Assembly: GCF_000315625.1 (NCBI RefSeq)
Contig: NW_005434628.1
Span: 519,385 to 583,384 of the forward strand
Direction: 5' to 3'
From: Guillardia theta CCMP2712
Lineage: Eukaryota; Protista; Cryptophyta
DNA: 64,000 nucleotides
This document shows positions 2,289 through 64,000 of the stretch, in pieces. Every line of letters starts with the position of its first letter. Positions within the stretch are counted from its first letter, which is position 1. The position numbers and the translations under genes were made by a program. A model generated the notes under the pieces. The model was not told the DNA's origin. It saw only the letters and a program-made list of their open reading frames with translations, and did not search any database.

Positions 2289-3319
2289 TAAACTTATTTC
2301 ATTCGATTCACTGTGAAGCAGAAGATGCCGTGCATCAATCTTAACGGTTGACTCGAATGAGCTCATCGGATCGTCGCCGGGACATTTTGGCCTTTGTCGG
2401 ACTCGCCGGGCGGCGGCGCGCCACCGTGCCGTCATCCGGGTGCCGCCCACTGGTAGTGCTACATAGGCGGCCCGGCCCGGCACGGGACAGTGCAGGTGAT
2501 CCGATCACATGCCGGGCCAGCCGTGCCAGTCAGATAGCCCCGCCGAGTTAACAAAAACTCTCCCGTAAACTAAGGCCCCGCGGCGACTCTGACGTGTTTC
2601 AAGGCAGCAATGTAGTACGTGCTGACCGGAAGACTCCGGGAGGCTTTCCTGGCCGTCACTTCAATGCTAAGGTCCTCTCATGTCCGATCTGGATACTCAC
2701 AGAGTCAGTGGGTTTAACATCCGGGCCTGCTCAGCGGCATACAGTACTCAGGCTAGCATACAGTCTATCTCTCATGTGCTCCGCAATTCTAGTCAAGTTT
2801 TGTGTGCATGAAAGTTAAACTTCGGTCTTGTGCAAAAACTGTCTTGTTACAACTAAGGTCGATGTGATATCTGCGTTACTTTTGGCATAGTACAAGTCTA
2901 ACAAACTTGTGCTCCGTCTCCCGGACTCCCGGCTCCCCGGGCCCGGCCCCCGGCCGGGCCGCCCGGCCACTGGCAGCCCGGCAGTCGGTCACGGCGGCCC
3001 GGCCGGGCCTAGCAACAAGAAAGTTCGCCTCGGAATGATTCCCTAAATGATGCAGAGGACAGCAATCGTAGTGGTGTGAACAAAGGAAGAGAGCCTTCCT
3101 AGTCTTCCACGTTCAACATGATGATGGCCGGGTCAAGGGCGAGGTACAGGATGGAAGAGCTCCTTCGGTCTAGCAACATGATCAAGGTTCCACGATGGCT
3201 GACCATGAGAGCAAGAGAGGTACGTCCATGCTGCCATGTCCTGTCTGTCTGATCGCTAGTCGCTCTAGAGACTTGCGGTCAGTTCTGAGACGTCGAGATG
3301 CCGTCTGGGAGGTGCACGC

Positions 3320-3640
3320 GGCTTCATGACAGAGGGAGGGATGAAGGGGCACACGGATGAGAAAGAGGATCCGATGGTACTTCATGACTCACACATGCTA
3401 CGAGTCTTCCATGCTAACTCAATCAAGGTCAGGAATGCTTGGATTGCAACCCTAACATGTACGAGCGCCATGTTCGGAGGAGGCATTGCGTTGGGATACA
3501 ACACGCTGCTTCCTGTGATGCATACGTGATCTTTCCCTGCGCTCTGTTTGACTCTCGTTCAGGCATGGGCGACGTTTCACGCGGGAGGAGTTGTTGCATG
3601 CTCGTTGAAGAAGCAGCCTTTCGAGATCGCCATGCACGGT
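3320..3640 (+). pseudogene. Possible membrane-protein gene fragment
   Basis: GT-AG-flanked exon-like piece VRNAWIATLTCTSAMFGGGIALGYNTLLP. No coherent continuation found. Confidence 0.2.
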
Positions 3641-4818
3641 AAAGTCGTCCAGTCGTTAAGATGGTCATAGATGTCGATTTGATTGTTATGATTACCAGCT
3701 CTGATTTTCTCTGGAGTGATGCTGTACTGGACCGGTGAGTGACTAGAATCTCTCTTCTCCATGATTGACATCTGTGTATGATCCTGCCGTTCTTGGTCTT
3801 GCTGTTTGCCACATGAACTGTGACTGATCGAACTCTGTACGAAGGTTATTGGGGAGGTGAAACATCACAGCAAAGGGCTATTGGAAAGAATGGGGAAGAG
3901 GATGATAGATGAAGACGAAGCGAATGTGAGAAGTGATGAAAGAAGTCTCGGCAGTCTAATCCTAGTAGTAAGGCGAATCCTGATCATATGGAAGTTCAGC
4001 CGATTATGAACAAACGTGTCACGTGTCACGTGTTGTTATTCCTTCAATCATATCAGTGTATGCGAGTAGTGTACAACTCTGAGCAACGGTCAGCGTCCTG
4101 AACAGGCTGCTTCAAGGCTTTGAGGATTCAAGCCGCTTCCGAAGTTGAGGCCCGGCCCGGCGCACTGAATGATTCATAGTGACTGCTGCGTACGGTAACT
4201 ACTTTAACCGTTGGAAAGCATTCGGAAGCTCGACTGCCGGAGTAACTTGACAGTAGTGTGGTAGTAAACCACGCGGCGGCCTGTCAGTGTGACAATTCGG
4301 ATCAGGCTGGCAGGTCGACCGTACCGTGACTCAGCCCGGCCGGACTGACTCTGCGGCGCGCCGCGGCGCGGGCCGGGCGGCCTCGGGCCCGGCCGGTGCC
4401 GGGCCGGGCCCTCAGTAGTACGGTACGGTAACTCAGGGCCCCGGCCGGGCCGCCGGTGCCTCCGAATCGCGCGCGGAGTCGATTTAACTGATTTTTTCAA
4501 AAGAATCGATTCGATTCACACTTGAAAACATTAAATCGATTCGATTCAATGATTGGAGGTGACGTAGAGGGATTGGCAGGTGATGGTGTATTGGGTAGGG
4601 GTCCTTTTATCAATGGGGGTCCGTTCAACAGGGTAGTAGAAGCTCAGGGTAAAAACGATAAGAGGGGTACTATAGCGAATACTGATATGGCTTCATTCGA
4701 TAAATCAGTATTCAATGTACACTCAAAGTCACCTCACAATAAGTAACAGCATTGTAGGGGTAGTATGACTTGGATCGGTTGAACTAGCAGGGTGGGTGTG
4801 GAGGAGCTGCAGGGCGGC

Positions 4819-6366
4819 ATGGCGCACGGGAGACTGGCCATGAAGGCGGCGCAGGCGGCCATGGTGATGGTTTTGTTGAGCTCTTCTGCTATGGCCCAAC
4901 AAGATCTCAAGGTGTGAAGTAGACGTATGCTTGAGATCCGCCACCACGATATTTGCGACTGATGATGCTGATTGCGAGTGATGCTTTCCAGCTGGTGTCG
5001 GCGATTGTTGTGAGCAAGTAGAGTGGATCGAGTTAGATTGACCGTCATGGCGGATTGATATGGAAGATCATGATGTTTGTTGACTGCAAGAATGATATGA
5101 GACAGGATTTTCTTGTTGATTTGACATTTTTCAATCGTCAAGAGCTCAGCGAGTCTAGCGCAGCATCTTGCATGCCTGACATATGCTTCCAGCTCAGCAA
5201 GAATGCAACAAGTGCATCAAAGGATTCCAAGTCCTCCATCGGAGGACACATCATCTCTGGATACGCAGATGCCTTCATCTCCTCGCTCATGATGATCATC
5301 GTGTCCGAGTTGGGTGATAAAACCTTTTTCATCGCCGCGGTGATGCGACTTGTGTAGAAGTCTCCCACTCACTTATTCTCAGATCATGGCCATGAAGCAC
5401 TCTCGTTGGATTGTTTTCTCTGGAGCCATAGCTGCGCTCGCCTTGATGACTGTCCTTTCATGTACCGCTTTTAAGATTGACGAGTGCATTGATTTTGACT
5501 AATACTTTCTTTTCAGCTGCATTCGGATACCTTTTGCCGAACATACTTCCCAGGGCATACACGCACTATGCCTCGATTGTTCTCTTCATCATCTTCGGAG
5601 CGAGACTCTTGAAGTGAGTCGGGAGCTTTGCCTTGCTTGCTTTGACATAGTTGCTCTTCCTTCCTTGCAGGGAAGGGCTCGAGATGGAGTCAGGGAAAGT
5701 CTCCGAGGAGCTGGAAGAGGTAAGTAATATCTGACGTGTTTTGTTCTTAACGGTTTGCCAGGTTGAAAACGAATTAGCCAAAGTTGGAAAGAAAACAGAT
5801 GTCGAGACTGCTGGTGTGCGATGTTGCTTTGCGATTTTTCCCTGACGCCGTTGATGTAGACGGGAACAATCAAAGCAATGACAACGTTTCCTTTACCAAC
5901 GGGATTTTGTGGCAGTCTTTCATCTTGACCTTCCTTGCTGAGTGAGATGCAAACCTTTTGCAGTTTGTGACCACTTTGACCTGAGCGATCCGGACAGGTG
6001 GGGCGATCGATCGCAGATTGCCACCATCGCTCTTGTGAGCTCCTTGTCTTTCGAAGGTCCCATCATGGTTTGACGTGTACCTTGCTGCAGGCTGCGCACA
6101 AGGATCCCTGGGGAGTAACGATCGGCGGAACATTGGGGCATGCTATCTGCACAGGGCTCGCTGTTCTTGGAGGGAGGATGCTCGCCTCACGGTAACCTGT
6201 GAGACCCAGAAGCCTCTGTGCTGACACTTGCGAACAGAATCTCAGAGAAGACCGTCGCGCTGTCCGGCGGAACTCTCTTCTTATTATTTGCCATCCATGG
6301 AATCCTGCAGGTATGGGTTCCGGGATGTCACTTCGGTGGTTGGATATGCCTTTAGAGACGAAGTGA
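4819..6366 (+). CDS. GDT1: GDT1/TMEM165 (UPF0016) Ca2+/Mn2+:H+ antiporter, multi-exon
   Basis: Both UPF0016 motifs are present (SELGDKTFFIAA and EWGDRSQIATIAL), plus PWGVTIGGTLGHAICTGLAVLGG and a signal-peptide-like first exon. The exact stop is approximate. Confidence 0.92.
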
Positions 6367-36800: not shown

Positions 36801-39800
36801 CCGCCCTCGGACGCGTATGACCCCGCCGGACAGTTCGTACATGTCCCGTTGCCGGGCCCCGGCTTGTAAGTTCCTGGCTGGCACGGATCGCAGCCGAAGC
36901 GATCGAGGGGCTGCTGCCCGCCTGCGGAGACGTTGGCAAGCCAGCCAGGGCTGAAGCCCGGCAAGCACTCACAGTCGCTGATGGATGTGCTCTGTGCGGG
37001 AGAGGTTTGATGGCTACCGCATCTCTTACAGTACGTCGCTCCAAGCTCGTCGTTGTAGTGTCCTGCTGGACATGAGCTGCAGGCAGTGGAGCCATTCGGA
37101 CTGCTGAAGAAGCCCAAGTCGCACAGACAGTCGTGTATGCTGGAGGATCCGGCTTGCGATTGCGTGTGCGACGGGCAGTGTTGACAGAAAGTAAGTCGGC
37201 TCTCGTTGTTGTACGTTCCTGGCAGACATGTGACGCAGTCACCACTCTTGGGGTCCATGTACATGCCGCTCATGCATTGACAATCCAGGCGGTCGATCCC
37301 TGGAGGTCGCTGTAGGACCCAGCAGCGCACGGGCTGCAAGCTGGGCCCCATCGCCTTGCGCCCGACAGGTTGGCCAGCGGGCTGGCGTCGTAGAAGCCGG
37401 CATGACACTTGCACTCCCATACAAACGAGCTGCCTGCCGCCGAGACCGCATTGGCAGGGCACTGCGCACAGACGGAGGAGCCCGTGCCGTTGCTGTAGCT
37501 TCCCTCAGCGCATGGCCGGCAATCTGGCCCGCCCGCGCGGGAAGCGTTCGCAGCAGCGTTGACCCCCTGCCTAGTCATCGACCCCGCCCCAGCGTCGTAG
37601 AAGCCTCCCTCGCAGATGCAGTCTGCCTGCGACGAGCTGCCCCGGAGGGAGGTCGAGTGGGTAGGACAGCCCGTGCATCCCGTCGCACCCCAGGCCTCGA
37701 GAGCAGCAGACGAGCTGCAGTTACCGGAGCAGGAGGCGGCGCGTGACCCGTTGCTGTACGTGCCGGGCGGGCATGCTGAGCAGCTCTTGAGGCCTTTCTC
37801 AGGCTTGTAGTACCCCGGCGGACACATCCTGCAGGCTGCGTACCCGGGCGTGGTGTTTGACGTTGGGCCGGAAGGGACGACCTGCAAGCTCAGGTTGGGC
37901 CCAGGCACGAGGCTTCCGTTGCCCGGCACCAGCATGTAGCCTGCCTCGCATCCGCAGTCGGCTTGTGACACGCTGCCCGCCGCAGACGAGGAATGCGGGG
38001 GACAGGCCGTGCAGCTCGTCGCTCCGCCCTCGGACGCGTATGACCCCGCCGGACAGTTCGTACATGTCCCGTTGCCGGGCCCCGGCTTGTAAGTTCCTGG
38101 CTGGCACGGATCGCAGCCGAAGCGATCGAGGGGCTGCTGCCCGCCTGCGGAGACGTTGGCAAGCCAGCCAGGGCTGAAGCCCGGCAAGCACTCACAGTCG
38201 CTGATGGATGTGCTCTGTGCGGGAGAGGTTTGATGGCTACCGCATCTCTTACAGTACGTCGCTCCAAGCTCGTCGTTGTAGTGTCCTGCTGGACATGAGC
38301 TGCAGGCAGTGGAGCCATTCGGACTGCTGAAGAAGCCCAAGTCGCACAGACAGTCGTGTATGCTGGAGGATCCGGCTTGCGATTGCGTGTGCGACGGGCA
38401 GTGTTGACAGAAAGTAAGTCGGCTCTCGTTGTTGTACGTTCCTGGCAGACATGTGACGCAGTCACCACTCTTGGGGTCCATGTACATGCCGCTCATGCAT
38501 TGACAATCGAGGATGCTGGTGCTGCCCGTAAGCCTGGACGTCATACCTGCGGGGCAGGCTGTGCAGGCGGTCGATCCCTGGAGGTCGCTGTAGGACCCAG
38601 CAGCGCACGGGCTGCAAGCTGGGCCCCATCGCCTTGCGCCCGACAGGTTGGCCAGCGGGCTGGCGTCGTAGAAGCCGGCATGACACTTGCACTCCCATAC
38701 AAACGAGCTGCCTGCCGCCGAGACCGCATTGGCAGGGCACTGCGCACAGACGGAGGAGCCCGTGCCGTTGCTGTAGCTTCCCTCAGCGCATGGCCGGCAA
38801 TCTGGCCCGCCCGCGCGGGAAGCGTTCGCAGCAGCGTTGACCCCCTGCCTAGTCATCGACCCCGCCCCAGCGTCGTAGAAGCCTCCCTCGCAGATGCAGT
38901 CTGCCTGCGACGAGCTGCCCCGGAGGGAGGTCGAGTGGGTAGGACAGCCCGTGCATCCCGTCGCACCCCAGGCCTCGAGAGCAGCAGACGAGCTGCAGTT
39001 ACCGGAGCAGGAGGCGGCGCGTGACCCGTTGCTGTACGTGCCGGGCGGGCATGCTGAGCAGCTCTTGAGGCCTTTCTCAGGCTTGTAGTACCCCGGCGGA
39101 CACATCCTGCAGGCTGCGTACCCGGGCGTGGTGTTTGACGTTGGGCCGGAAGGGACGACCTGCAAGCTCAGGTTGGGCCCAGGCACGAGGCTTCCGTTGC
39201 CCGGCACCAGCATGTAGCCTGCCTCGCATCCGCAGTCGGCTTGTGACACGCTGCCCGCCGCAGACGAGGAATGCGGGGGACAGGCCGTGCAGCTCGTCGC
39301 TCCGCCCTCGGACGCGTATGACCCCGCCGGACAGTTCGTACATGTCCCGTTGCCGGGCCCCGGCTTGTAAGTTCCTGGCTGGCACGGATCGCAGCCGAAG
39401 CGATCGAGGGGCTGCTGCCCGCCTGCGGAGACGTTGGCAAGCCAGCCAGGGCTGAAGCCCGGCAAGCACTCACAGCCAGAAGTTTGATTTTGTGCTGTTA
39501 ATGGAAAGACACACACTGGAATCCATCCTGTTGAACGTTCCTGACAATTGGTTCCCCAGACCTGCTGGACATGAGCTGCAGGCAGTGGAGCCATTCGGAC
39601 TGCTGAAGAAGCCCAAGTCGCACAGACCCTCTTCTCTCCACGCCTCCTCTGATCCCCTTGGTCCTGCACCTCCTGCACCTCCTGCACCTCCTGCACCTTC
39701 CTGCACCTCCTGCTCTTCCTGCACCTCCGCTTTCCTTCGGCCTACTGACCTGCATGAGCTGTCCTTCCCGCGACACCGTCCGTGTCCGCTGCAGTTAACT

Positions 39801-42800
39801 TTGGCTATGCACCTTCCTTCACACTCGCCGCCGTATCGGTTTCTTGTGCAAGCCTCGCACATCATGCCCGAGTATCCTCCGTAGCACTCGCACCGACCTT
39901 GCACGCATCGCCTCCCGTCTCCCAGGCAGTCCATGTCGGACCGACATGTTCCGTTGTGATCTGCCGTACTGTTGGCTATGATGTCCGAGCAGTTGGGTCC
40001 TGTGTATCCCCTGAAGCACCTGGACCGACCCCGTCAGTAAGGTACAGGAGCGGCAAGCGGGAGGAAAGAAGACCCCACAGTAAGCAGAACACAGCAGGAC
40101 CAAGGCTCGCGCCCTCTCTAGCCTCCTCTGATCCCCTTGGTCCTGCACCTCCTGCACCTTCCTGCACCTCCTGCACCTTCCTGCACCTCCTGCACCTTCC
40201 TGCACCTCCGCTCTCCTTCGGCCTACTGACCTGCATGAGCTGTCCTTCCCGCGACACCGTCCGTGTCCGCTGCAGTTAACTTTGGCTATGCACCTTCCTT
40301 CACACTCGCCGCCGTATCGGTTTCTTGTGCAAGCCTCGCACATCATGCCCGAGTATCCTCCCTAGCAATCGCAACCGACTTTGCACGCATCGCCTCCCGT
40401 CTCCCAGGCAGTCCATGTCGGACCGACATGTTCCGTTGTGATCTGCCGTACTGTTGGCTATGATGTCCGAGCAGTTGGGTCCTGTGTATCCCCTGAAGCA
40501 CCTGGACCGACCCCGTCAGTAAGGTACAGGAGCGGCAAGCGGGAGGAAAGAAGACCCCACAGTAAGCAGAACACAGCAGGACCAAGGCTCGCGCCCTCTC
40601 TACCCCCCTTCTTCTCTCGCTCTGCTCTCCTGGCCTCCTCTGATCCCCTTGGTCCTGCACCTCCTGCACCTTCCTGCACCTCCTGCGCCCTCCTGCACCT
40701 CCGCTTTCCTTCGGCCTACTGACCTGCATGAGCTGTCCTTCCCGCGACACCGTCCGTGTCCGCTGCAGTTAACTTTGGCTATGCACCTTCCTTCACACTC
40801 GCCGCCGTATCGGTTTCTTGTGCAAGCCTCGCACATCATGCCCGAGTATCCTCCGTAGCACTCGCACCGACCTTGCACGCATCGCCTCCCGTCTCCCAGG
40901 CAGTCCATGTCGGACCGACATGTTCCGTTGTGATCTGCCGTACTGTTGGCTATGATGTCCGAGCAGTTGGGTCCTGTGTATCCCCTGAAGCACCTGGACC
41001 GACCCCGTCAGTAAGGTACAGGAGCGGCAAGCGGGAGGAAAGAAGACCCCACAGTAAGCAGAACACAGCAGGACCAAGGCTCGCGCCCTCTCTACCCCCT
41101 TTCTTCTCTCGCTCTGCTCTCCGAGCCTCCTCTGATCCCCTTGGTCTTGCACGTCCTGCACCATCCTGCACCTCTGCACCTCCTGCACCTCCTGCACCTC
41201 CTGCACCTCCTGCACCTTCCTGCACCTCCGCTTTCCTTCGGCCTACTGACCTGCATGAGCTGTCCTTCCCGCGACACCGTCCGTGTCCGCTGCAGTTAAC
41301 TTTGGCTATGCACCTTCCTTCACACTCGCCGCCGTATCGGTTTCTTGTGCAAGCCTCGCACATCATGCCCGAGTATCCTCCGTAGCACTCGCACCGACCT
41401 TGCACGCATCGCCTCCCGTCTCCCAGGCAGTCCATGTCGGACCGACATGTTCCGTTGTGATCTGCCGTACTGTTGGCTATGATGTCCGAGCAGTTGGGTC
41501 CTGTGTATCCCCTGAAGCACCTGGACCGACCCCGTCAGTAAGGTACAGGAGCGGCAAGCGGGAGGAAAGAAGACCCCACAGTAAGCAGAACACAGCAGGA
41601 CCAAGGCTCGCGCCCTCTCTACCCCCCTTCTTCTCTCGCTCTGCTCTCCGAGCCTCCTCTGATCCCCTTGGTCCTGCACCTTCCTGCACCTCCTGCACCT
41701 CCTGCACCTTCCTGCTCCTTCGGCCTACTGACCTGCATGAGCTGTCCTTCCCGCGACACCGTCCGTGTCCGCTGCAGTTAACGCGACACCGTCCGTGTCC
41801 GCTGCAGTTAACTTTGGCTATGCACCTTCCTTCACACTCGCCGCCGTATCGGTTTCTTGTGCAAGCCTCGCACATCATGCCCGAGTATCCTCCGTAGCAC
41901 TCGCACCGACCTTGCACGCATCGCCTCCCGTCTCCCAGGCAGTCCATGTCGGACCGACATGTTCCGTTGTGATCTGCCGTACTGTTGGCTATGATGTCCG
42001 AGCAGTTGGGTCCTGTGTATCCCCTGAAGCACCTGGACCGACCCCGTCAGTAAGGTACAGGAGCGGCAAGCGGGAGGAAAGAAGACCCCACAGTAAGCAG
42101 AACACAGCAGGACCAAGGCTCGCGCCCTCTCTACCCCCCTTCTTCTCTCGCTCTGCTCTCCTGGCCTCCTCTGATCCCCTTGGTCCTGCACCTTCCTGCA
42201 CCTTCCTGCACCTTCCTGCACTTCCTGCACCTTCCTGCACCTCCTGCATCTCCTGCACCTTCCTGCACCTCCTGCACCTTCGCTCTCCTTCGGCCTACTG
42301 ACCTGCATGAGCTGTCCTTCCCGCGACACCGTCCGTGTCCGCTGCAGTTAACTTTGGCTATGCACCTTCCTTCACACTCGCCGCCGTATCGGTTTCTTGT
42401 GCAAGCCTCGCACATCATGCCCGAGTATCCTCCGTAGCACTCGCACCGACCTTGCACGCATCGCCTCCCGTCTCCCAGGCAGTCCATGTCGGACCGACAT
42501 GTTCCGTTGTGATCTGCCGTACTGTTGGCTATGATGTCCGAGCAGTTGGGTCCTGTGTATCCCCTGAAGCACCTGGACCGGCCCCGTCAGTAAGGTACAG
42601 GAGCGGCAAGCGGGAGGAAAGAAGCCCCACAGTAAGCAGAACACAGCAGGACCAAGGCTCGCGCCCTCTCTACCCCCCTTCTTCTCTCGCTCTGCTCTCC
42701 TGGCCTCCTCTGATCCCCTTGGTCCTGCACCTCCTGCACCTTCCTGCACCTCCTGCACCTCCTGCACCTCCTGCACCTTCCTGCACCTCCTGCGCCCTCC

Positions 42801-45251
42801 TGCACCTCCGCTTTCCTTCGGCCTACTGACCTGCATGAGCTGTCCTTCCCGCGACACCGTCCGTGTCCGCTGCAGTTAACTTTGGCTATGCACCTTCCTT
42901 CACACTCGCCGCCGTATCGGTTTCTTGTGCAAGCCTCGCACATCATGCCCGAGTATCCTCCGTAGCACTCGCACCGACCTTGCACGCATCGCCTCCCGTC
43001 TCCCAGGCAGTCCATGTCGGACCGACATGTTCCGTTGTGATCTGCCGTACTGTTGGCTATGATGTCCGAGCAGTTGGGTCCTGTGTATCCCCTGAAGCAC
43101 CTGGACCGACCCCGTCAGTAAGGTACAGGAGCGGCAAGCGGGAGGAAAGAAGACCCCACAGTAAGCAGAACACAGCAGGACCAAGGCTCGCGCCCTCTCT
43201 ACCCCCCTTCTTCTCTCGCTCTGCTCTCCGAGCCTCCTCTGATCCCCTTGGTCCTGCACCTCCTGCACCTTCCTGCACCTTCCTGCACCTCCTGCACCTC
43301 CTGCACCTTCCTGCACCTCCTGCGCCCTCCTGCACCTCCGCTTTCCTTCGGCCTACTGACCTGCATGAGCTGTCCTTCCCGCGACACCGTCCGTGTCCGC
43401 TGCAGTTAACTTTGGCTATGCACCTTCCTTCACACTCGCCGCCGTATCGGTTTCTTGTGCAAGCCTCGCACATCATGCCCGAGTATCCTCCGTAGCACTC
43501 GCACCGACCTTGCACGCATCGCCTCCCGTCTCCCAGGCAGTCCATGTCGGACCGACATGTTCCGTTGTGATCTGCCGTACTGTTGGCTATGATGTCCGAG
43601 CAGTTGGGTCCTGTGTATCCCCTGAAGCACCTGGACCGGCCCCGTCAGTAAGGTACAGGAGCGGCAAGCGGGAGGAAAGAAGACCCCACAGTAAGCAGAA
43701 CACAGCAGGACCAAGGCTCGCGCCCTCTCTACCCCCCTTCTTCTCTCGCTCTGCTCTCCTGGCCTCCTCTGATCCCCTTGGTCCTGCACCTCCTGCACCT
43801 TCCTGCACCTCCTGCGCCCTCCTGCACCTCCGCTTTCCTTCGGCCTACTGACCTGCATGAGCTGTCCTTCCCGCGACACCGTCCGTGTCCGCTGCAGTTA
43901 ACTTTGGCTATGCACCTTCCTTCACACTCGCCGCCGTATCGGTTTCTTGTGCAAGCCTCGCACATCATGCCCGAGTATCCTCCGTAGCACTCGCACCGAC
44001 CTTGCACGCATCGCCTCCCGTCTCCCAGGCAGTCCATGTCGGACCGACATGTTCCGTTGTGATCTGCCGTACTGTTGGCTATGATGTCCGAGCAGTTGGG
44101 TCCTGTGTATCCCCTGAAGCACCTGGACCGGCCCCGTCAGTAAGGTACAGGAGCGGCAAGCGGGAGGAAAGAAGACCCCACAGTAAGCAGAACACAGCAG
44201 GACCAAGGCTCGCGCCCTCTCTACCCCCCTTCTTCTCTCGCTCTGCTCTCCGAGCCTCCTCTGATCCCCTTGGTCCTGCACCTCCTGCACCTTCCTNNNN
44301 NNNNNNNNNNNNNNNNNNNNNNNNNNNNNNNNNNNNNNNNNNNNNNNNNNNNNNNNNNNNNNNNNNNNNNNNNNNNNNNNNNNNNNNNNNNNNNNNNNNN
44401 NNNNNNNNNNNNNNNNNNNNNNNNNNNNNNNNNNNNNNNNNNNNNNNNNNNNNNNNNNNNNNNNNNNNNCGCACATCATGCCCGAGTATCCTCCGTAGCA
44501 CTCGCACCGACCTTGCACGCATCGCCTCCCGTCTCCCAGGCAGTCCATGTCGGACCGACATGTTCCGTTGTGATCTGCCGTACTGTTGGCTATGATGTCC
44601 GAGCAGTTGGGTCCTGTGTATCCCCTGAAGCACCTGGACCGACCCCGTCAGTAAGGTACAGGAGCGGCAAGCGGGAGGAAAGAAGACCCCACAGTAAGCA
44701 GAACACAGCAGGACCAAGGCTCGCGCCCTCTCTACCCCCCTTCTTCTCTCGCTCTGCTCTCCGAGCCTCCTCTGATCCCCTTGGTCCTGCACCTTCCTGC
44801 ACCTTCCTGCACCTTCCTGCACCTCCGCTCTCCTTCGGCCTACTGACCTGCATGAGCTGTCCTTCCCGCGACACCGTCCGTGTCCGCTGCAGTTAACTTT
44901 GGCTATGCACCTTCCTTCACACTCGCCGCCGTATCGGTTTCTTGTGCAAGCCTCGCACATCATGCCCGAGTATCCTCCGTAGCATTGGCATGTTCCTGAA
45001 TGACACATTGTTCTGTTTGTATGGATGCAATCTAGATTGGATGCACAAGTGTTTTGTGCTGATCGCAATGTCAATTTTTGCTTTGTTCTTTGCGGAAGAT
45101 GTTTGTATTTCATTTCAAGACTGGGCGTCAATTTTTCAATCAGATATTTCATCTTCAAGGTTTCTTTTTCCTGTCTCTGATTGTTATCTTCGATTTGGAT
45201 ACAAACTTGCAGTATGCTCAGGATTATGATTCCCTTCAGCTTCATGTTCAT
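33809..45251 (-). CDS. Giant type-I membrane cysteine-rich protein: signal peptide, EGF/laminin-EGF exon array, GCC2/GCC3 (ephrin-receptor-like/TNFR-type) repeats, TM, cytoplasmic tail. Frame-disrupted as assembled.
   Basis: First exon MNMKLKGIIILSIL…; repeated CECYGGYSGMMC/CSGHGRC; CxxCPxGTY…C repeats; TM LHVILSIVGASCGSLILVFAL. Frame breaks at ~40370, ~39630, 37285 and ~35020. Whether it is one gene is inferred. Confidence 0.6.
34760..35110 (-). repeat. Three copies of a unit encoding MLSEGSAHQRPELLFSKL
   Basis: aagcttcgagaagaggagctccggtcgctggtgggcagacccttccgacagcatcg occurs at ~34768, ~34913 and ~35054. Confidence 0.9.
36530..39475 (-). repeat. 1278-bp (426-codon) coding tandem repeat, ~2.3 copies
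   Basis: Identical ORFs recur at 36576, 37799 and 39077 (periods 1223 and 1278). One copy lacks the 55 bp corresponding to 38509-38563. Confidence 0.95.
39640..44987 (-). repeat. Tandem array of ~480-570 bp exon+intron units (at least 10 copies, spans an N gap)
   Basis: Exons at 39750-40019, 40231-40501, 40724-40993, 41251-41520, 41733-42032, 42303-42572, 42831-43100, 43361-43630, 43853-44122 and a partial one to 44633. Confidence 0.95.
44297..44469. other. Assembly gap (N run)
   Basis: Run of n. Confidence 1.
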
Positions 45252-47081: not shown

Positions 47082-49568
47082 CTGCCAGGACGGCCAAGTT
47101 TTGCTACAGCGCTTCTAGGATTGAGATGCCCAAGGTGGATGACCAGGTAGAAGACCAGGTTGCCTCCTTCCTTGTTGGCCCCGCCGTTGTCATTACTACT
47201 GTTCAGCATTATGTGTTGTAAAGACGCTAAAACTATTTAGTTCTGTTGGTCATCAATAGGTCCGCCAATGCATTCTATTCGTGGTTGGCCGCGGTCGGAG
47301 CTCCGGCATGGGCGCCGTGACACGCGATCATTAGGCAACTCACAGTAAAGGTCCAGTACTTTTTTAGAGTTGTTTTAGAGTAGTAATAATCAACGACTGT
47401 CTCAGTTAAGTGAAAAATCAGTACGAGGACACTCTCAGTGTGTGTATACAGCCGTTAACTAACGTACCGTCACGGGCCCCGCGGCCGGGACTGAGTATGA
47501 GTCAAGTTAGTTGGACTCACCGTGGCATCACCCTGACCGTCACCGGCGTGGCACTGCGGCACGCCGTCGGACAGTCGAATCACATTATCGGATGCCTACA
47601 GTATCATGTCACTTGAGTTAGTGTAGCTCCAGGCCTCCCTCAGTGTCCTGCGCTGCCATCACAGAGTCGCGGGGCGGTGCATTCCGGTATCATGGTATCA
47701 CGTTTTTGGCATTCCGAGGCTTCGGCCACAGCCCGCGGCCGGGCGCTGGCCGACCGTACATCGCCGCTCAGCCGACATCCCGCCGGCGGCGCGGCGCGCG
47801 GCCGGCCGCCGGCCCGGACCGGAAGTTCATTGAAACCGTACCGTTGAACTTCAAGCGAGTCAACGGACAATTCCCGGCCGCCGGGCGGGAATCGGATCTC
47901 TTCCTTTACTCAAATCTCATTGAATTGGGCCTGCGCGCACCGTCACTGTTAATTGAACTTGGAAGGTTCGCCGGGCCCGAACGCCGTCGGAAGGCCGCGG
48001 CGGCTGAGAGTCCGAGCGGAGTCACACACCCGGAGATGCCAAGTTCGGTATCGGGGATGGGTATGATACTTGTTACGGTTATGGAGTGGTAGCCAGCTTG
48101 GGGTAGCTGTCGCCATGTCCTCTTGAAGCTCTCCCACCCAGCTTCCCTGGGGAGGTGAAGGAGCCTGGCAAAGGGTTTTCTTCTGCTAGCATCTTGTCCT
48201 CTATGGCATGTAGAGTTGATATTGTCCCCGGTTTTGTCTTGTTGTCGATCATTTCCCAGCTAATTGTTGTCTTCATTCTCTCTGCTATCCATAGTGCAAT
48301 TCTTTCGGGGCCCCTGACCTCGTCATTTTGCTTTGTAGTTGAGCTATCGTTTGGCACCCCCACTGGGTACACCAAGCCTTTCACTAAGTAATACCCTAAA
48401 CCCGTAAACGGAGAGAGAGAGAGAAGAGAAGACAGGACCCCATGCTTTATATACAGCCTGATAACCAGGGGTAGTATTGCCCCCCGGGCCCCCCGAGGAT
48501 GCTTCCTCTGGTCCGATTCCATCAAATATTCAGTGACGGGCCGGCGTAATGGAGTACCGTACCGTTGCTCCAAAACAGTTACAATTTATCACTGAGTCTC
48601 GGCTCGGCAAGTCTGGGCTCTAATACGATCATTTGGCGGGCCCGGCGTGCTGAGCACACAGTAAAGTGCTATTGGCACGGTGACCTGGTCAGGGTCGAGG
48701 CCCAGTACTGTCATATAAAAGTTAAGTGTCTGACAGATGCCGGACACGAGCATAAGGTCTTGTCCGGCAGGGAGGGCAAAGTTGAGTAAATATTTTGTCC
48801 TGCATCTTCAATGAATGCCAAATAATACCTTTGGAAAGCAGGGCATGATTTTACTAGGGTACTTGAAGTATTTAGTAGGGGTAGCATAAAAATTATGCTA
48901 CTTATAACAATTCTTATATAACAGATGCCGGACAAACCAATTAGTGCATTAGTTTTACTCAACTTTGGAACCTCTAATTGCTCCTACCCCCTTGCCCTGC
49001 ACTGTCCGATCTTATAGAAATGTGTGGCCCCACCACCCCACCCCCTTCCACAAACAGCTTCGCGCCATTCATGGCTTCTTCACACACATGCTTGTTTGGC
49101 AATCAATGCAAGGTACATGATGAAAGCATTCGATTGTATCAATGCTGAAGATGCAAGCCTGATGTGCCATCATCTTTGCGTGAATGAATATGTTGATTCG
49201 GAAGGATACACCAGCTGTGAGTGTGAGCAACGTGGGAAAACAGCCATTCCATCAATTCCTCAAGATGCACTTGCTTGCAAGAAGTCATGTAGAAGGATCT
49301 AATCATGGCACAGAGTGGATGATGATGATGATGATGTGATTTTGATGATGCTGAGGAGGTGGTGGTGGTGGAGCACGAGCTGGAGCACATGCAACAGGAC
49401 GAGGACGAGGAGAGGACGAGGACCGTACGGAGAAGAAGGGTGCCTTTGGGGAATGGAATCTGTAAGAGATTGGATGGGAAAGAGATTGGATCTGTAAGAG
49501 ATTGGTCAACCCGAAGACCTCCTCTTGGAATTCTGTAAGCCAACTGATTACTTGTGTGAGAAGAGAGC

Positions 49569-53388: not shown

Positions 53389-54071
53389 AGGGTTTAGGGT
53401 TTGCCCGTGTATTTCAGGCACTATGGCTCCGCGCCAGGTGTAGGGGAAGCCGCCAGGGCGCGGAGGAAGCTGCAAGCAAAGGTTTGGTATAGTTCAAACA
53501 GCCTTCTAAGTTTGGTTTTTCAGTTTGATGAAAGTGTTCGCAACCTGCTGTATCGGAGATCATGCCAATACACGCAGGGGAGCTTGTAGATGCCTCGACG
53601 GTCCTCGTAGCTGATCTGGTCGAGGATGCACCCCAACGGCTATCGCAAAAGCCATACGCTCGACATGTCAGCAGGCACGACGTGTTACACTCTCTGGATG
53701 CGATGGAGTGACGCATCCAGATAGTGGTTTATGCAGCAGATGAAGGAAGCCAAGAAGCAGAAGGTCGAGACATACACTGCCACAGCAGGCAACGAGGTGA
53801 CTTCCTTCATCTCCATGACTCTCCTGGGTATCTCCTCGGTGTATGTCAACCACGAAGAGAAGCTGAAGAAGAAGTTCCGAAGAGATCGGACTGATCGTAG
53901 ACTCAGTGCAAGAGAGTAAAGCGATCATGTGGAAGGCTCCGTATCACGGCATAGATCCGAGATAGCGAGTGCTGATGAGATCCCGGTGACTGTTTCCTTC
54001 CTCCGCAATGCACAAGCGGAGAAGCTCTGGCAGGGAAGAGAGGACTTCAAGATCGACGGTCGCAAGTTCAC
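53389..54071 (+). mobile_element. Truncated, frameshifted copy of the telomere-repeat-headed element
   Basis: AGGGTTTAGGGTTT followed by sequence colinear with ~61741-62474, with internal deletions. Confidence 0.8.
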
Positions 54072-60346: not shown

Positions 60347-61654
60347 CTTGAAGAGAATTCAACCTATGGAATACATCATTAGGTTCAATGTTAATGATCT
60401 TTGACTGAAGGTCTTTGAGTGGTCGTACAAGGGGCTGAATGCATGATTCTTCTTATGACAAGAGGAAGGGCAAGGAGATGGGAACGATATGAAAGTCATT
60501 TAGTTATAAAACGACTGGGGTAGTGAGACAATGATGAGAGGAAGGTATTGAAGAGAGGATGGGGATAGAAGATACGACTGCAGAGATCGCAAGTTAAAGG
60601 ATGAAAGTAACGTCTGCAGAGATCGCAAGGGTAACAAACAACACCCACACTCAAAGCACTAAACCCTAGACAATCAAAGCACATGCAGGCAGAGCGCATG
60701 CACGCGAGAGCTCATCGCCGAGGAAGAGGCGCATGAACCGAGGAGGGACGTAATATTAGCCAAATGTGCGGCACTGGCGCGGGCCGGCCGGGCCGCGGCG
60801 GCGCGGGCGGACGTACCCGGCGTACGGTCACGTACGGTAGTACGCCGGTCTCTTTACTCAAAGTTAAGTTAAAAATCAGTACGAGGACAATCAGGAGAGT
60901 CGAGGAGGCTTGACCCTGACACTGTCGCACAGGCCAAACGGCGAGAAGAGAAAAGACAGCGAGAACCAAACCCAATCCCGAGAGAGAACAAGCAGAAGAA
61001 ATCCTTGCGCAGTATCTGCAGGCGAGCGTCATCTCGGCAAAGCTCGGGCAGGAGCAGGCAGGAACGAACAGGGAAAAGGAAAAGGCCTCCAACAAGAGAA
61101 GGAGAGGAGAACGAGAGGACAGCGCACACGAGCTATCTCCACCCAAGAAAATAGCCAGACAAAACCAAGGGAGAGAGGAAACTATCTTTGACTCGGCAGC
61201 CGCACACAAAAGAAAACAAATCCTCAGACCCAACAATAGAATGGTTGGACTCTCAGCGTCGCTGGACTCGGCCGGGCTCCCTTCACACTCGTCTGCACCA
61301 AGGGAAGAGGACGATAGCAATCGAAGAGACGGCAACCAAAGAACCCATCTAGCAGAGATCAGATCACAGAATGCGAGACTGACATCAGTTCCTTCCGCAA
61401 CTGGCCGATCCTATACGCACACCCTCAAGCTCTGGTGACAGACAAAGCCTCGGAGCCAGGGAGCCACACAGAGCGGTGGTCTGGATGGACAAAACGGCGT
61501 GATTCCGCGAGCAAATTCTGGACACAGTACAGGTCATTCTGCTAGGATAGAAGAAAGTTACCGGACGGATTTCAAGTAATCAACCGATTCCCAAAGGGCG
61601 CCCAGATAGCCTACGCAGCAAACTATTGGAGGACAGGGAATCGCGGCCTAACCC

Positions 61655-61742
61655 AGGTTTATGGTTTATGGTTTAGGGTTTAGGGTATAGGGTTTAGGCC
61701 GGTTTAGGGTTTAGGGTTTAGGGTTTAGGGTTTAGGGTTTAG
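61655..61742 (+). repeat. Interstitial telomere-type (TTTAGGG)n array, ~12 units
   Basis: TTTATGG x2, TTTAGGG x2, TATAGGG, TTTAGGCCGG, then five perfect TTTAGGG plus TTTAG. Confidence 0.95.
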
Positions 61743-64000
61743 CGCCGGTTATTTCAGGCACCATGGCTGCACGCGTGGTGTAGGGGAAGCTGCCAGGGCG
61801 CCAAGGAAGCTGCAAGCGAGAGGTTTGTATACTTCAAATAGCTTTCTAAGTATGGTTCTTCAGTATGATGAAAATGTTCGCAACCTGCTGTATCGGAGAT
61901 CATGCCAATACACGCAGAGCGGACTTGTGGATGCCTCTGTCCTCGAAGCTGATCTCGTCGAGAGGGTGAAGAGCTTCGCGAAGCGTTATCCGAACAGCAG
62001 GACAGCCCAGGCTTGCAAGGCTGTGGAGGGATGCACCCCCGACGCTATCGCAGAAGCCATCCGCTCGACATGTCAGCAGGCACGACGTGAGCTTCTCCAA
62101 GAAGCGATGACTGGATGGAGTGACGCATCCAGAGAGTGGTTTATGCAGCAGATTGAAGAAGCCAAGAAGGAGAAGGTCGAGACATACACCGCCTCAGCAG
62201 GCAACGAGGTGACTTCCTTCATCTCCATGACTCTCCTGGGCATCTCCTCGGTGTATGTCAACCATGAAGAAAAGCTGAAGAAGAAATTCGAAGAGATCGG
62301 ACTGATCGTAGACTCAGTGCAAGAGAGTAAAGCAATCATGTGGAAGGCTCCGTATAGACCCGAGATAGCGAGTGCTGAGGAGATCCCGGTGACTGTTTCC
62401 TTCCTCCGCAATGCACAAGCGGAGAAGCTCTGGCAGGGAAGAGAGGACTTCGCGATCGATGGTCGCAAGTTCACAGCTGTACATGTGAGCATCGTGCACG
62501 ATCGATCTTTCAAGATTCGAGCCAAGAGAGGACCCTGGGGCAAAGGGGGCAGCTTGGCAGAGCTGACTCACCTGCTAACCTTGGGCGGCATGACAACGGC
62601 TGAGATAGCTGCCGTCTATCGCTATCAGCTGCTGCGCCAGTCCCTTGCAGCGGTCCAACTCCAGCCGCTGGCAGGCATGCTGGTCGCTGGGGCGCCAGGA
62701 CAGCAAGTCCACAAAGGCTTAGGTCAGAAAGGCTTCATCGCTGTAGGGGCCAACGTCATCTGGAGACAGAGGGAGGTGGAGTGGATCGTCTCCTCGAGCT
62801 GCCCAGAGGCGAATGATACAGCATTTCGAGCTTTCCGAGAGAGCGAAGCGATGGAGGGAGTACACCTGACTCTGTTCAGCGAGGACCCGAAGATCAGAGA
62901 GGCGCTCGCAGTCGAGTTGACAGCTGATCGCTTTGTGTCCAGAAATAAGTTGAAGAAGGCATCAAGGATGCAGAAGAAGGCAGGCGGCAAGGACGGCAAG
63001 GAGATCAAGATCATCATCAAGTCGACGGCGGCATCTGGTCGCTTCACGAGGAAGGAGATGGAGGGGCTGTGCAACGGCGGCAACACGTCTATCGCAAGAG
63101 TCAAGAGAGTCTTCTTGGAGATCGCTAACAGGCTCGAGATCAACGTTGAAGGCATCGACATGGAGGAGGATTTGAACACCAAGTCCTGGAACGGGTCCAA
63201 GCTATGCATCCTCCTCGGCTCCACGGAGGATGCTCGACGCATGATGAAGGAGCTGCCCTTCTATCTCGAAGGCGCAGCAACCAAGCTCGAAGCAGTCGGC
63301 TTCGACAAGGAGCCTGACTCTGAGGCGGCTGGTCAGCGGGGCACCAGCGACGCAGCGCAGCGACCGGAGGAGAGCGAGGGAGAGTGGCTGGAGTTTACAG
63401 ACCTGGAGAGGATCACAATGGAGGCAGCATCTCCGTCAAGCCAAGAGGACATGCAGCTCGTCAGCGAGCTGTCAGCAGTCATCGAAGATGCAGCTTCTTT
63501 GAACGAGGCAGGGACGAGCGAGCCGATCAAGCTGGTCCTGGACAAGGCCGTTGGCAACCTCCACGACACCTTCTACTCTCCGGGGAGCCTGGAGTTCATG
63601 TCGCTGGGAGAGTGGGCGAAGATGCCAGAGGAGCAGGGAGTTGGGCGCAACGCTCTCAAGGAGAAGCTGGGGAAGTGGCTGCAGAGCAAGCGCTGGACTC
63701 GCGTGCAAGGAGAGAGCAAGAAGGCAAGGAGAGGCAGCGCGTTCTCGCCACGGGCAACGGCAGCTGCTGAGCTTGAGCAGGAGGCGGAGAGCGACGACAT
63801 AGAGCGTCGATCTCTTAGCTTCCTGTTTATAGCACTGAGTAAATTCGCAGAGATGCATGTGCTGGCCTGCTCGCTGAAGGTGGACAAGAAGGACCGACTG
63901 CGAGTGGAGATGAGGGAAGATGACGAAGAAGAGGAAGACATGGAGGAAGAGCAAGGCGAGGGCGAGGAAGAAGACGGGGCGAGCCCGTACCGAGCTGAGC
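61729..64000 (+). CDS. Long stop-free frame of unknown function (first in-frame ATG 61852), open at the window end; putative mobile-element or subtelomeric-family ORF
   Basis: Manual translation finds no stop after TAG 61726-61728: …QYDENVRNLLYRRSCQYTQSGLVDASVLEADLVERVKSF…EEEQGEGEEEDGASPYRAE. It is missing from the ORF track, presumably because no stop falls in the window. Confidence 0.8.

Follow-up and report, generated by a model that had tools for sequence, protein, structure and literature searches.

Results

The contig end and the element it carries

The window analysed here is a stretch of 64,000 nucleotides from the cryptophyte Guillardia theta CCMP2712 (C46:519385-583384), taken from a draft assembly of 2012 that holds 87.1 Mb in 669 contigs with collapsed repeats, and it closes exactly at the terminus of contig C46 (583,384 bp). 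Its outermost part is occupied by an element that starts directly after a tract of telomere repeats and carries one long open reading frame (ORF) without introns. The features of this part, from the inside outward, are the following:

61656-61742, plus strand: telomere-repeat tract of ~12 units, the presumed insertion target, capping a truncated older relic of a long interspersed nuclear element (LINE)
61743-61760, plus strand: single 5′ minisatellite unit CGCCGGTTATTTCAGGCA, abutting the telomere tract; 0-37 units in other copies
61761-61851, plus strand: 5′ leader of 91 nt, starting CCATGGCTGCACGCG, kept in all copies
61852-64000, plus strand: ORF1-like gene, intronless, 715 aa in complete copies, cut here by the contig end

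The tract holds variant units on its proximal side and perfect units on its distal side, and the two-unit telomere motif occurs five times in the window against none in 100 shuffles. Starting with the ATG at 61852, 716 codons can be read without a stop through the final base, bearing out the initial annotation, made from the letters of the window, in its description of a telomere array that abuts a long intronless frame. In other copies the open frames reach ~750-840 codons when the in-frame stretch upstream is counted, and they end in a TGA stop codon (L003:3753-3755) at a position equivalent to the final few bases of the window. The window frame shows no stop because 6 bp (TGAGCT) are missing from this copy at the stop position and the contig ends there, and the ~430-nt 3′ untranslated region (UTR) and (AAT)n tail are absent from it because the contig stops.

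Architecture of the complete element

Complete units, as seen in a tandem pair on C157 (L003) and among 30 fetched copies, measure 2.7-3 kb and contain a single ORF without any ORF2. They run from telomere repeats through the minisatellite (units of 19-22 bp), the leader, the 715-aa ORF, the 3′ UTR and (AAT)n into telomere repeats again, with the sense strand continuous with the G-rich telomere strand and the ORF facing the chromosome end. In the L003 pair the minisatellite comprises 13 units of GCGCCGGTTATTTCAGGCA, sometimes with CCA, and the 3′ UTR holds one to three 76-bp repeats followed by AATAAACTCACAT, the (AAT)n tail and telomere repeats.

Each of the 30 fetched copies is colinear with the rest from the 5′ end to beyond the stop codon, where the 3′ UTR follows, and none of them was found to have a second ORF. 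Since the copies run from the ORF into the 3′ UTR, and since the full-length ones end ~430 nt past the stop codon with a 3′ UTR and tail of their own, the element is complete and ORF1-only (for the homology to the ORF1 of LINEs, see below). The 715-aa ORF had no match in Pfam, neither to reverse transcriptase (RT), endonuclease, helicase or zinc knuckle nor, at the sequence level, to an RNA recognition motif (RRM), and a sequence search of the PDB with it returned nothing meaningful and no helicase. That no RT or endonuclease was visible in the part at hand, as had been remarked, is correct and holds for the whole element, both by Pfam and by the complete copies elsewhere.

Copy number, placement and junctions

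A search of the genome with window:61745-64000 returned at least 40 copies at ~99% identity, mostly <1 kb from a contig end, some of them in tandem at a spacing of 2.7-3.1 kb. With a 36-mer at the ORF start (≤2 mismatches, whole genome), 166 ORF starts could be counted (89 on the plus and 77 on the minus strand), and a 26-mer at the 3′ terminus (≤1 mismatch, whole genome) gave 104 intact 3′ ends. Among 100 places listed, all but one of the minus-strand copies lie <35 kb from a contig start and the plus-strand copies lie close to contig ends where the end position is known, the exceptions in placement being C60:377465 (internal), C47:562553 and C17:967975 (30-35 kb in) and C72:441004 (inverted). 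Between a terminal copy and the end of its contig lie 85-470 bp of telomere repeats. With at least 166 copies, nearly all of them flanked by telomere repeats and located at contig ends, the genome-wide count leaves no room for the alternatives raised in the initial annotation, namely an element with only two copies, copies that mostly have no TTTAGGG beside them, and a single-copy host gene.

The 28 distinct 3′ ends each carry 1-7 uninterrupted AAT units, and in 22 of them the telomere repeat follows in the same phase right after the tail, with the junction between T and A of the unit; the remaining six mostly show an interrupted tail or a single base change. On the 5′ side the commonest junction is repeat...TTTAGG followed by AGCGCCGG, and there are at least five further start points inside the first minisatellite unit, giving at least six junction types. 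One 5′-truncated copy, 149 bp long with telomere repeats on both flanks (L015), was the only one found, so that 5′ truncation is rare. Copies truncated at the 3′ end are either capped directly by telomere repeats (L003/L014, L024 and L022) or run straight into the next element at its 5′ minisatellite (L012 and L027).

An arrangement of this kind could also arise in a Y′-like subtelomeric family, that is, from a host sequence or a long-dead element that is now copied from one chromosome end to another solely through recombination or through break-induced replication primed in interstitial telomere tracts, instead of by reverse transcription. Yeast X-(TG)n-Y′-(TG)n has the same architecture, with tandem units split by telomere repeats and an ORF toward the end, and the nearly constant 5′ ends, the losses at the 3′ ends and the 99% identity among copies would all suit such a family. 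However, the length of the tail varies between copies at an otherwise exact junction, the 5′ junctions are of six or more kinds with variable minisatellite counts, the 149-bp 5′-truncated copy is embedded in telomere repeats, and the ORF contains no helicase domain according to Pfam and the PDB sequence search. A Y′-like origin is thus unlikely in our judgement, and the homology and variation described in the following sections bear on it further.

Homology to LINE ORF1 and candidate partner LINEs

When the genome was scanned for RT with the PF00078 profile, the top family comprised at least 13 identical matches near contig ends, sense outward, with open frames up to ~2,500 aa. One complete LINE is located as follows:

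C15:1035720-1046527: LINE1, complete copy, with an ORF1 of 703 aa and an ORF2 of 2,503 aa

LINE1 runs from a telomere tract through ~30 minisatellite units of its own (20 bp each), ORF1, ORF2, the 3′ UTR and a (CTA)n tail into telomere repeats, and its ORF2 contains an apurinic/apyrimidinic-type endonuclease (APE; PF03372, E 4.8e-8) and an RT (E 3.8e-35). A second family, LINE2, at C181 and C183, has the 5′ minisatellite GGTTCCTTATTTCCTGGCA and the 3′ end ...GTCTAATAAACTCAAAT(AAT)n, with open frames up to 2,261 aa in LINE2-type copies. An intact LINE2 lies on a 10.7-kb contig of a JGI sample (L073); its ORF1 has 712 aa and its ORF2 has 2,573 aa, while tail and junction are the same.

The ORF of the element shows 29% identity to LINE1 ORF1 over 699 aa (E 8e-85) and 31% identity to LINE2 ORF1 over 717 aa (E 1e-84), and it is, by sequence comparison, a LINE ORF1 homologue. 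LINE1 and LINE2 share the target repeats and the orientation of the element. The three families have in common a box, TCTAATAAA(A/C)TC, just before the tail, and another, (C)CC.T(C/T)TAGAC, ~70 nt farther upstream; the (AAT)n tail is common to the element and LINE2, with 32 nt at 97% identity. Every family has its own 19-22-bp minisatellite directly after the telomere repeat. The LINE ORF1 homology, together with LINE boxes and a LINE-type tail at the 3′ end, further argues against the Y′-like family considered above.

Among solved structures, those nearest to the partner RT are R2 (E 1e-22) and L1 ORF2p (E 1e-18). The domain search of the partner LINE ORF2 gave no second nuclease besides APE. 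The ORF2 of the telomeric LINEs is unusually long, with 2,503-2,575 aa (L044:3492-9998 plus L046:2-1000, corresponding to C15:1038491-1045999; P0095 and P0096; L073:2253-9974). It has ~450 aa ahead of the APE, with a weak match to the Ulp1/C48 peptidases (PF02902, E 0.004), a family that is also on record for relatives of 47-48% identity, and it has a weak zf-RVT match near the C-terminus and ~1,000 aa past the RT without an assigned domain.

Further repeats were observed around these elements. Beyond the short telomere tract behind the element, L005 and L022 (reverse complement) carry a further family with the 5′ minisatellite unit GGATCCCTTTATCTGAGG, which is similar to the GGTTCGCTTTATCTGAGGCA units with which L073 starts, so that these chromosome ends are home to at least five or six families. 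Immediately upstream of a 336-bp 5′-truncated LINE2 3′ end there is a dispersed repeat of 193 bp (L009:3308-3500, on C150), of which at least 20 internal copies exist at 95-100% identity.

The ORF1-only lineage and its relatives

A related family, here called family B (P0015, 716 aa), is 59-61% identical to the ORF of the element and is represented by ~20 copies at contig ends, with a unit of equal size. One family B copy (L052; C210:1-6000, reverse complement 2889-5480) ends in ...GAACGTGAGTCCC right before telomere repeats without (AAT)n, so that either this copy is 3′-truncated or the 3′ end of family B differs. In the ORF1 tree, the element, family B and two sequences from Hanusia phi form one group with 100/100 support, and the clade of the element and family B stands apart from the LINE1 and LINE2 ORF1s and from those of a third type. 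Judged from these sequence relationships, the ORF1-only lineage is old. The protein family is narrow, since a profile search of 1.84 billion representative proteins gave only 57 relatives.

These results bear on whether the element could simply be the 5′ part of an autonomous LINE whose ORF2 was cut off by the window. The window does end within the ORF, and full LINEs with an ORF1 of ~700 aa are present at the same ends. Nevertheless, in the 30 fetched copies the stop codon gives way to the 3′ UTR and tail and ORF2 is absent, which already refutes a LINE fragment for the copies seen, and the LINE ORF1s are only ~30% identical and fall into separate clades with 100/100 support; a truncated autonomous LINE is extremely improbable. 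The proposal of the initial annotation that the frame might be ORF1 of a telomere-repeat-specific element thus stood for the LINE ORF1 homology and for the specificity, but not in so far as it implied a fragment of a longer element.

Selection, predicted fold and expression

The 26 full-length ORFs differ pairwise by 0.6%, and their nonsynonymous (N) and synonymous (S) variants are distributed as follows:

Singleton variants: N 11, S 30
Shared variants: N 12, S 21
Total variants: N 23, S 51

The overall N/S of 23/51 compares with a neutral expectation of 2.46, corresponding to an omega of ~0.18 (binomial p = 1e-12 overall and 6e-9 for the singletons alone), and internal stops are absent from 38 of 40 copies. 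These values show purifying selection on the ORF. Filtering reaches even the youngest differences, which fits with a fast turnover of ends in which the surviving copies descend from functional RNA. The singletons, too, lean towards synonymous changes, a bias that matches repeated passage through functional RNA better than it does passive copying of DNA and is a further point against a Y′-like family.

Strong purifying selection with nearly all copies intact could also suggest that the ORF1-like protein serves the host, being kept for capping or lengthening chromosome ends beside telomerase, so that the element would be a mutualist instead of a parasite. The confinement of the element to chromosome ends and the age of the ORF1-only lineage, with its 59-61% identity to family B and its grouping with Hanusia phi, are consistent with such a role. 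On the other side, selection for an ORF1p acting in cis within a niche of fast turnover gives the same numbers, and telomerase is present and caps the ends; a match to the telomerase RNA-binding domain was found at C21:562211 (51 bits, above the cut-off). A host-serving telomere component is accordingly a very unlikely explanation in our view.

AlphaFold2 with 4 sequences gave an unusable model, with a predicted local distance difference test (pLDDT) score of 49, and an alignment of 26 sequences was used instead, giving a moderate model with a pLDDT of 71. The best Foldseek matches of this model were multi-RRM proteins, led by the four-RRM Prp24 (E 1e-5, probability 1.0) and followed by raver1, SFPQ/NONO and PUF60. 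Residues 384-483 matched RRM and ACT ferredoxin folds with middling Z scores of 7-8.4 (root-mean-square deviation 2.1-3.1 Å over 71-81 residues). The predicted model suggests that the ORF1-like protein may be an RNA-binding ORF1p of multi-RRM-like organization.

In the annotation of Guillardia theta CCMP2712, the ORF appears many times over under the name 'hypothetical protein GUITHDRAFT_...'. Among transcriptome-derived proteins, one recorded for Heterocapsa arctica (P0013) is 100% identical over 461 aa, probably a carry-over of Guillardia RNA, and Hanusia phi has a transcribed homologue. At least 10 small sequencing runs from the same organism, whose RNA nature is a guess, contain 75-86% of the words of the ORF. 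Taken together, these records indicate that the element is likely transcribed.

Older layers of the contig end

Inward of the young element, the window holds relics of earlier insertions:

53389-54071, plus strand: decayed older copy of the element, comprising a telomere remnant of 13 nt, a single diverged minisatellite unit and the leader, followed by the initial part of the ORF
60981-61641, plus strand: relic of a LINE2-type ORF2, 72-84% identical, 3′-truncated, with the telomere tract directly after it
48032-48377, minus strand: relic of a LINE2-type ORF2, 87% identical, in inverted orientation

The second copy reported in the initial annotation is real and shares both the telomere junction and the 5′ end of the young element. 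Its identity to that element is 87-89%, it contains frameshifts as well as an internal deletion of 66 bp, and it breaks off at 54071. A stretch of 6.8 kb of single-copy DNA separates it from a repeat at 60851-60978. Reading outward, the layers are a LINE2-type relic, the decayed copy, single-copy DNA, the 128-bp repeat, the second LINE2-type relic, the telomere tract and the young element, and the relic at 60981-61641 is an earlier layer of the chromosome end.

The repeat at 60851-60978 is a dispersed sequence of ~128 bp with more than 40 copies at 96-100% identity, inside many contigs and on both strands, and it looks like a young miniature inverted-repeat transposable element (MITE) or short interspersed nuclear element (SINE). 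Farther inward, at 39640-45251, arrays of a 9-10-bp repeat, TCCTGCACC, recur each 500-530 bp.

Discussion

A probable ORF1-only retrotransposon of telomere repeats

Given the fixed junctions, the LINE ORF1 homology and the selected single ORF, the element is most likely a non-autonomous, ORF1-only retrotransposon without long terminal repeats (non-LTR) that inserts specifically into telomere repeats. Its copying enzyme is probably borrowed from full LINEs residing in the same repeats; the RT and endonuclease would come, if at all, from the separate 10.7-kb LINEs at the same ends.

Under such a lifestyle, transcription would probably start in the minisatellite, and the RNA would be coated by the predicted multi-RRM-like RNA binder that the element itself encodes. 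The ORF2p of a partner LINE could then recognise the shared 3′ end, nick the C-rich strand within CCC/T/AAA and reverse-transcribe from the (AAU)n tail by target-primed reverse transcription. Repeated insertion, in combination with terminal erosion and re-capping by telomerase, may subsequently build the head-to-tail arrays split by short telomere tracts. Terminal erosion, or deletion of the target when the next element inserts, would remove the distal 3′ end of a copy, after which telomerase would re-cap the end, and 3′-truncated copies would be common because of this proposed cycle of erosion, insertion and re-capping.

Several points weigh against this retrotransposon interpretation. Retrotransposition is read from static copies in a single draft assembly of 2012 with collapsed repeats, and recombination between ends surely also moves units. 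The usual signature of LINEs, 5′ truncation, is rare here, and the ORF starts (166) outnumber the intact 3′ ends (104). Target-site duplications are indistinguishable from the flank, the target itself being a 7-bp repeat. RNAalifold predicted no common pairs in the last 150 nt of four families. The ORF is only ~30% identical to the ORF1 of either LINE, no close autonomous relative was identified, and which LINE mobilises the element is a guess. The RRM assignment leans on a moderate model with middling Z scores, and it is a guess that the sequencing runs containing the ORF are RNA.

Beyond a retrotransposon exploiting its target, the ends of this telomerase-positive cryptophyte might be kept jointly by telomerase and a guild of retroelements, in which the ORF1-only element would be an old, selected partner for protection or lengthening. 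On the sequences at hand such a joint maintenance seems doubtful to us; if true, it would represent an independent HeT-A-like symbiosis outside animals.

The element also offers explanations at the level of the genome resource, both for the dozens of annotated G. theta gene models that are labelled 'hypothetical protein' and for the points at which many G. theta contigs stop.

Comparison with known telomeric systems

Telomere-specialised retrotransposons are textbook cases only in insects, namely HeT-A, TART and TAHRE in Drosophila and TRAS and SART in Bombyx. In the literature, which here does not cover Repbase, no description of nuclear telomeric retroelements in Guillardia was found. The initial annotation had likened the element to telomere-targeting retroelements in general; the likeness is apt for SART1 in target, position and orientation, and for HeT-A in coding capacity, while MoTeR and Athena are less close.

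In SART1 of Bombyx mori, the insertion point lies between T and A of the G-rich unit, and the sense strand follows the orientation of the G strand (PMC7265360). The element of G. theta resembles SART1 and TRAS1 in occupying a fixed position in telomerase-type repeats, the T/A site and the orientation being identical to those of SART1. Further likenesses are the machinery of APE-type endonuclease and RT, which here resides in the partner LINEs, the importance of 3′ UTR motifs and the coexistence with telomere repeats. In contrast, the present element is without ORF2, its tail is (AAT)n and not poly(A), and its 5′ end is a variable minisatellite. The partner LINEs also depart from SART1 and TRAS1, which belong to the R1 clade, in an ORF2 of 2,500 aa with a possible Ulp1/C48-like N-terminal domain; the solved RTs nearest to theirs are R2 and L1, and the present host is a cryptophyte.

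Telomere-specialised elements with ORF1 alone are known from HeT-A of Drosophila and others of drosophilids (PMC13534243). Like HeT-A, the element encodes an ORF1/Gag-type protein alone and would depend on the RT of another element; it is likewise confined to chromosome ends, forms head-to-tail arrays, is the most abundant family there and would be truncated at its distal end by erosion. However, HeT-A joins a bare chromosome end, its 3′ end lying proximally, and its host lacks telomerase repeats, whereas the element of G. theta has a distal 3′ end and takes the telomerase repeat as its target. The Gag of HeT-A has zinc knuckles, whereas the protein of the element has none according to Pfam and is predicted to be RRM-like.

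The Y′ elements and the telomere-linked helicase genes of fungi share with the element the subtelomeric tandem units split by telomere repeats, with a long ORF toward the end, but the element has no helicase domain and differs by its LINE-type ORF1, simple-repeat tail and variable junctions. The Drosophila I factor ends at its 3′ terminus in a few TAA/AAT repeats and not in poly(A). The (AAT)n tail of the element is similar, although the I factor is autonomous and not telomere-specific. Zepp in Chlorella and Coccomyxa, GilM/GilT in Giardia, MoTeR in Magnaporthe and the Penelope-like Athena/Coprina elements are comparable as retroelements that accumulate at protist, algal or fungal telomeres. 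Compared by description, they all differ in encoding an RT of their own; in addition, MoTeR has a restriction-like endonuclease, Athena has no endonuclease, and Zepp is not repeat-specific. Because it has no ORF2, no poly(A) and no zinc knuckles, the element belongs to none of the families of SART1, HeT-A and the I factor.

If the retrotransposon interpretation holds, a distant eukaryote combines both known strategies, namely site-specific insertion into telomerase repeats and an abundant ORF1-only dependent that outnumbers its presumed RT donors, within several families built alike from modules, with a 5′ minisatellite, an ORF1 and conserved 3′ boxes. Such a system would be a second case, independent of the first, in which to study how transposons come to settle at chromosome ends, and it could be used to test whether ORF1-only dependents arise predictably at ends and how they coexist with telomerase, side by side with the insect systems represented by HeT-A and SART1.

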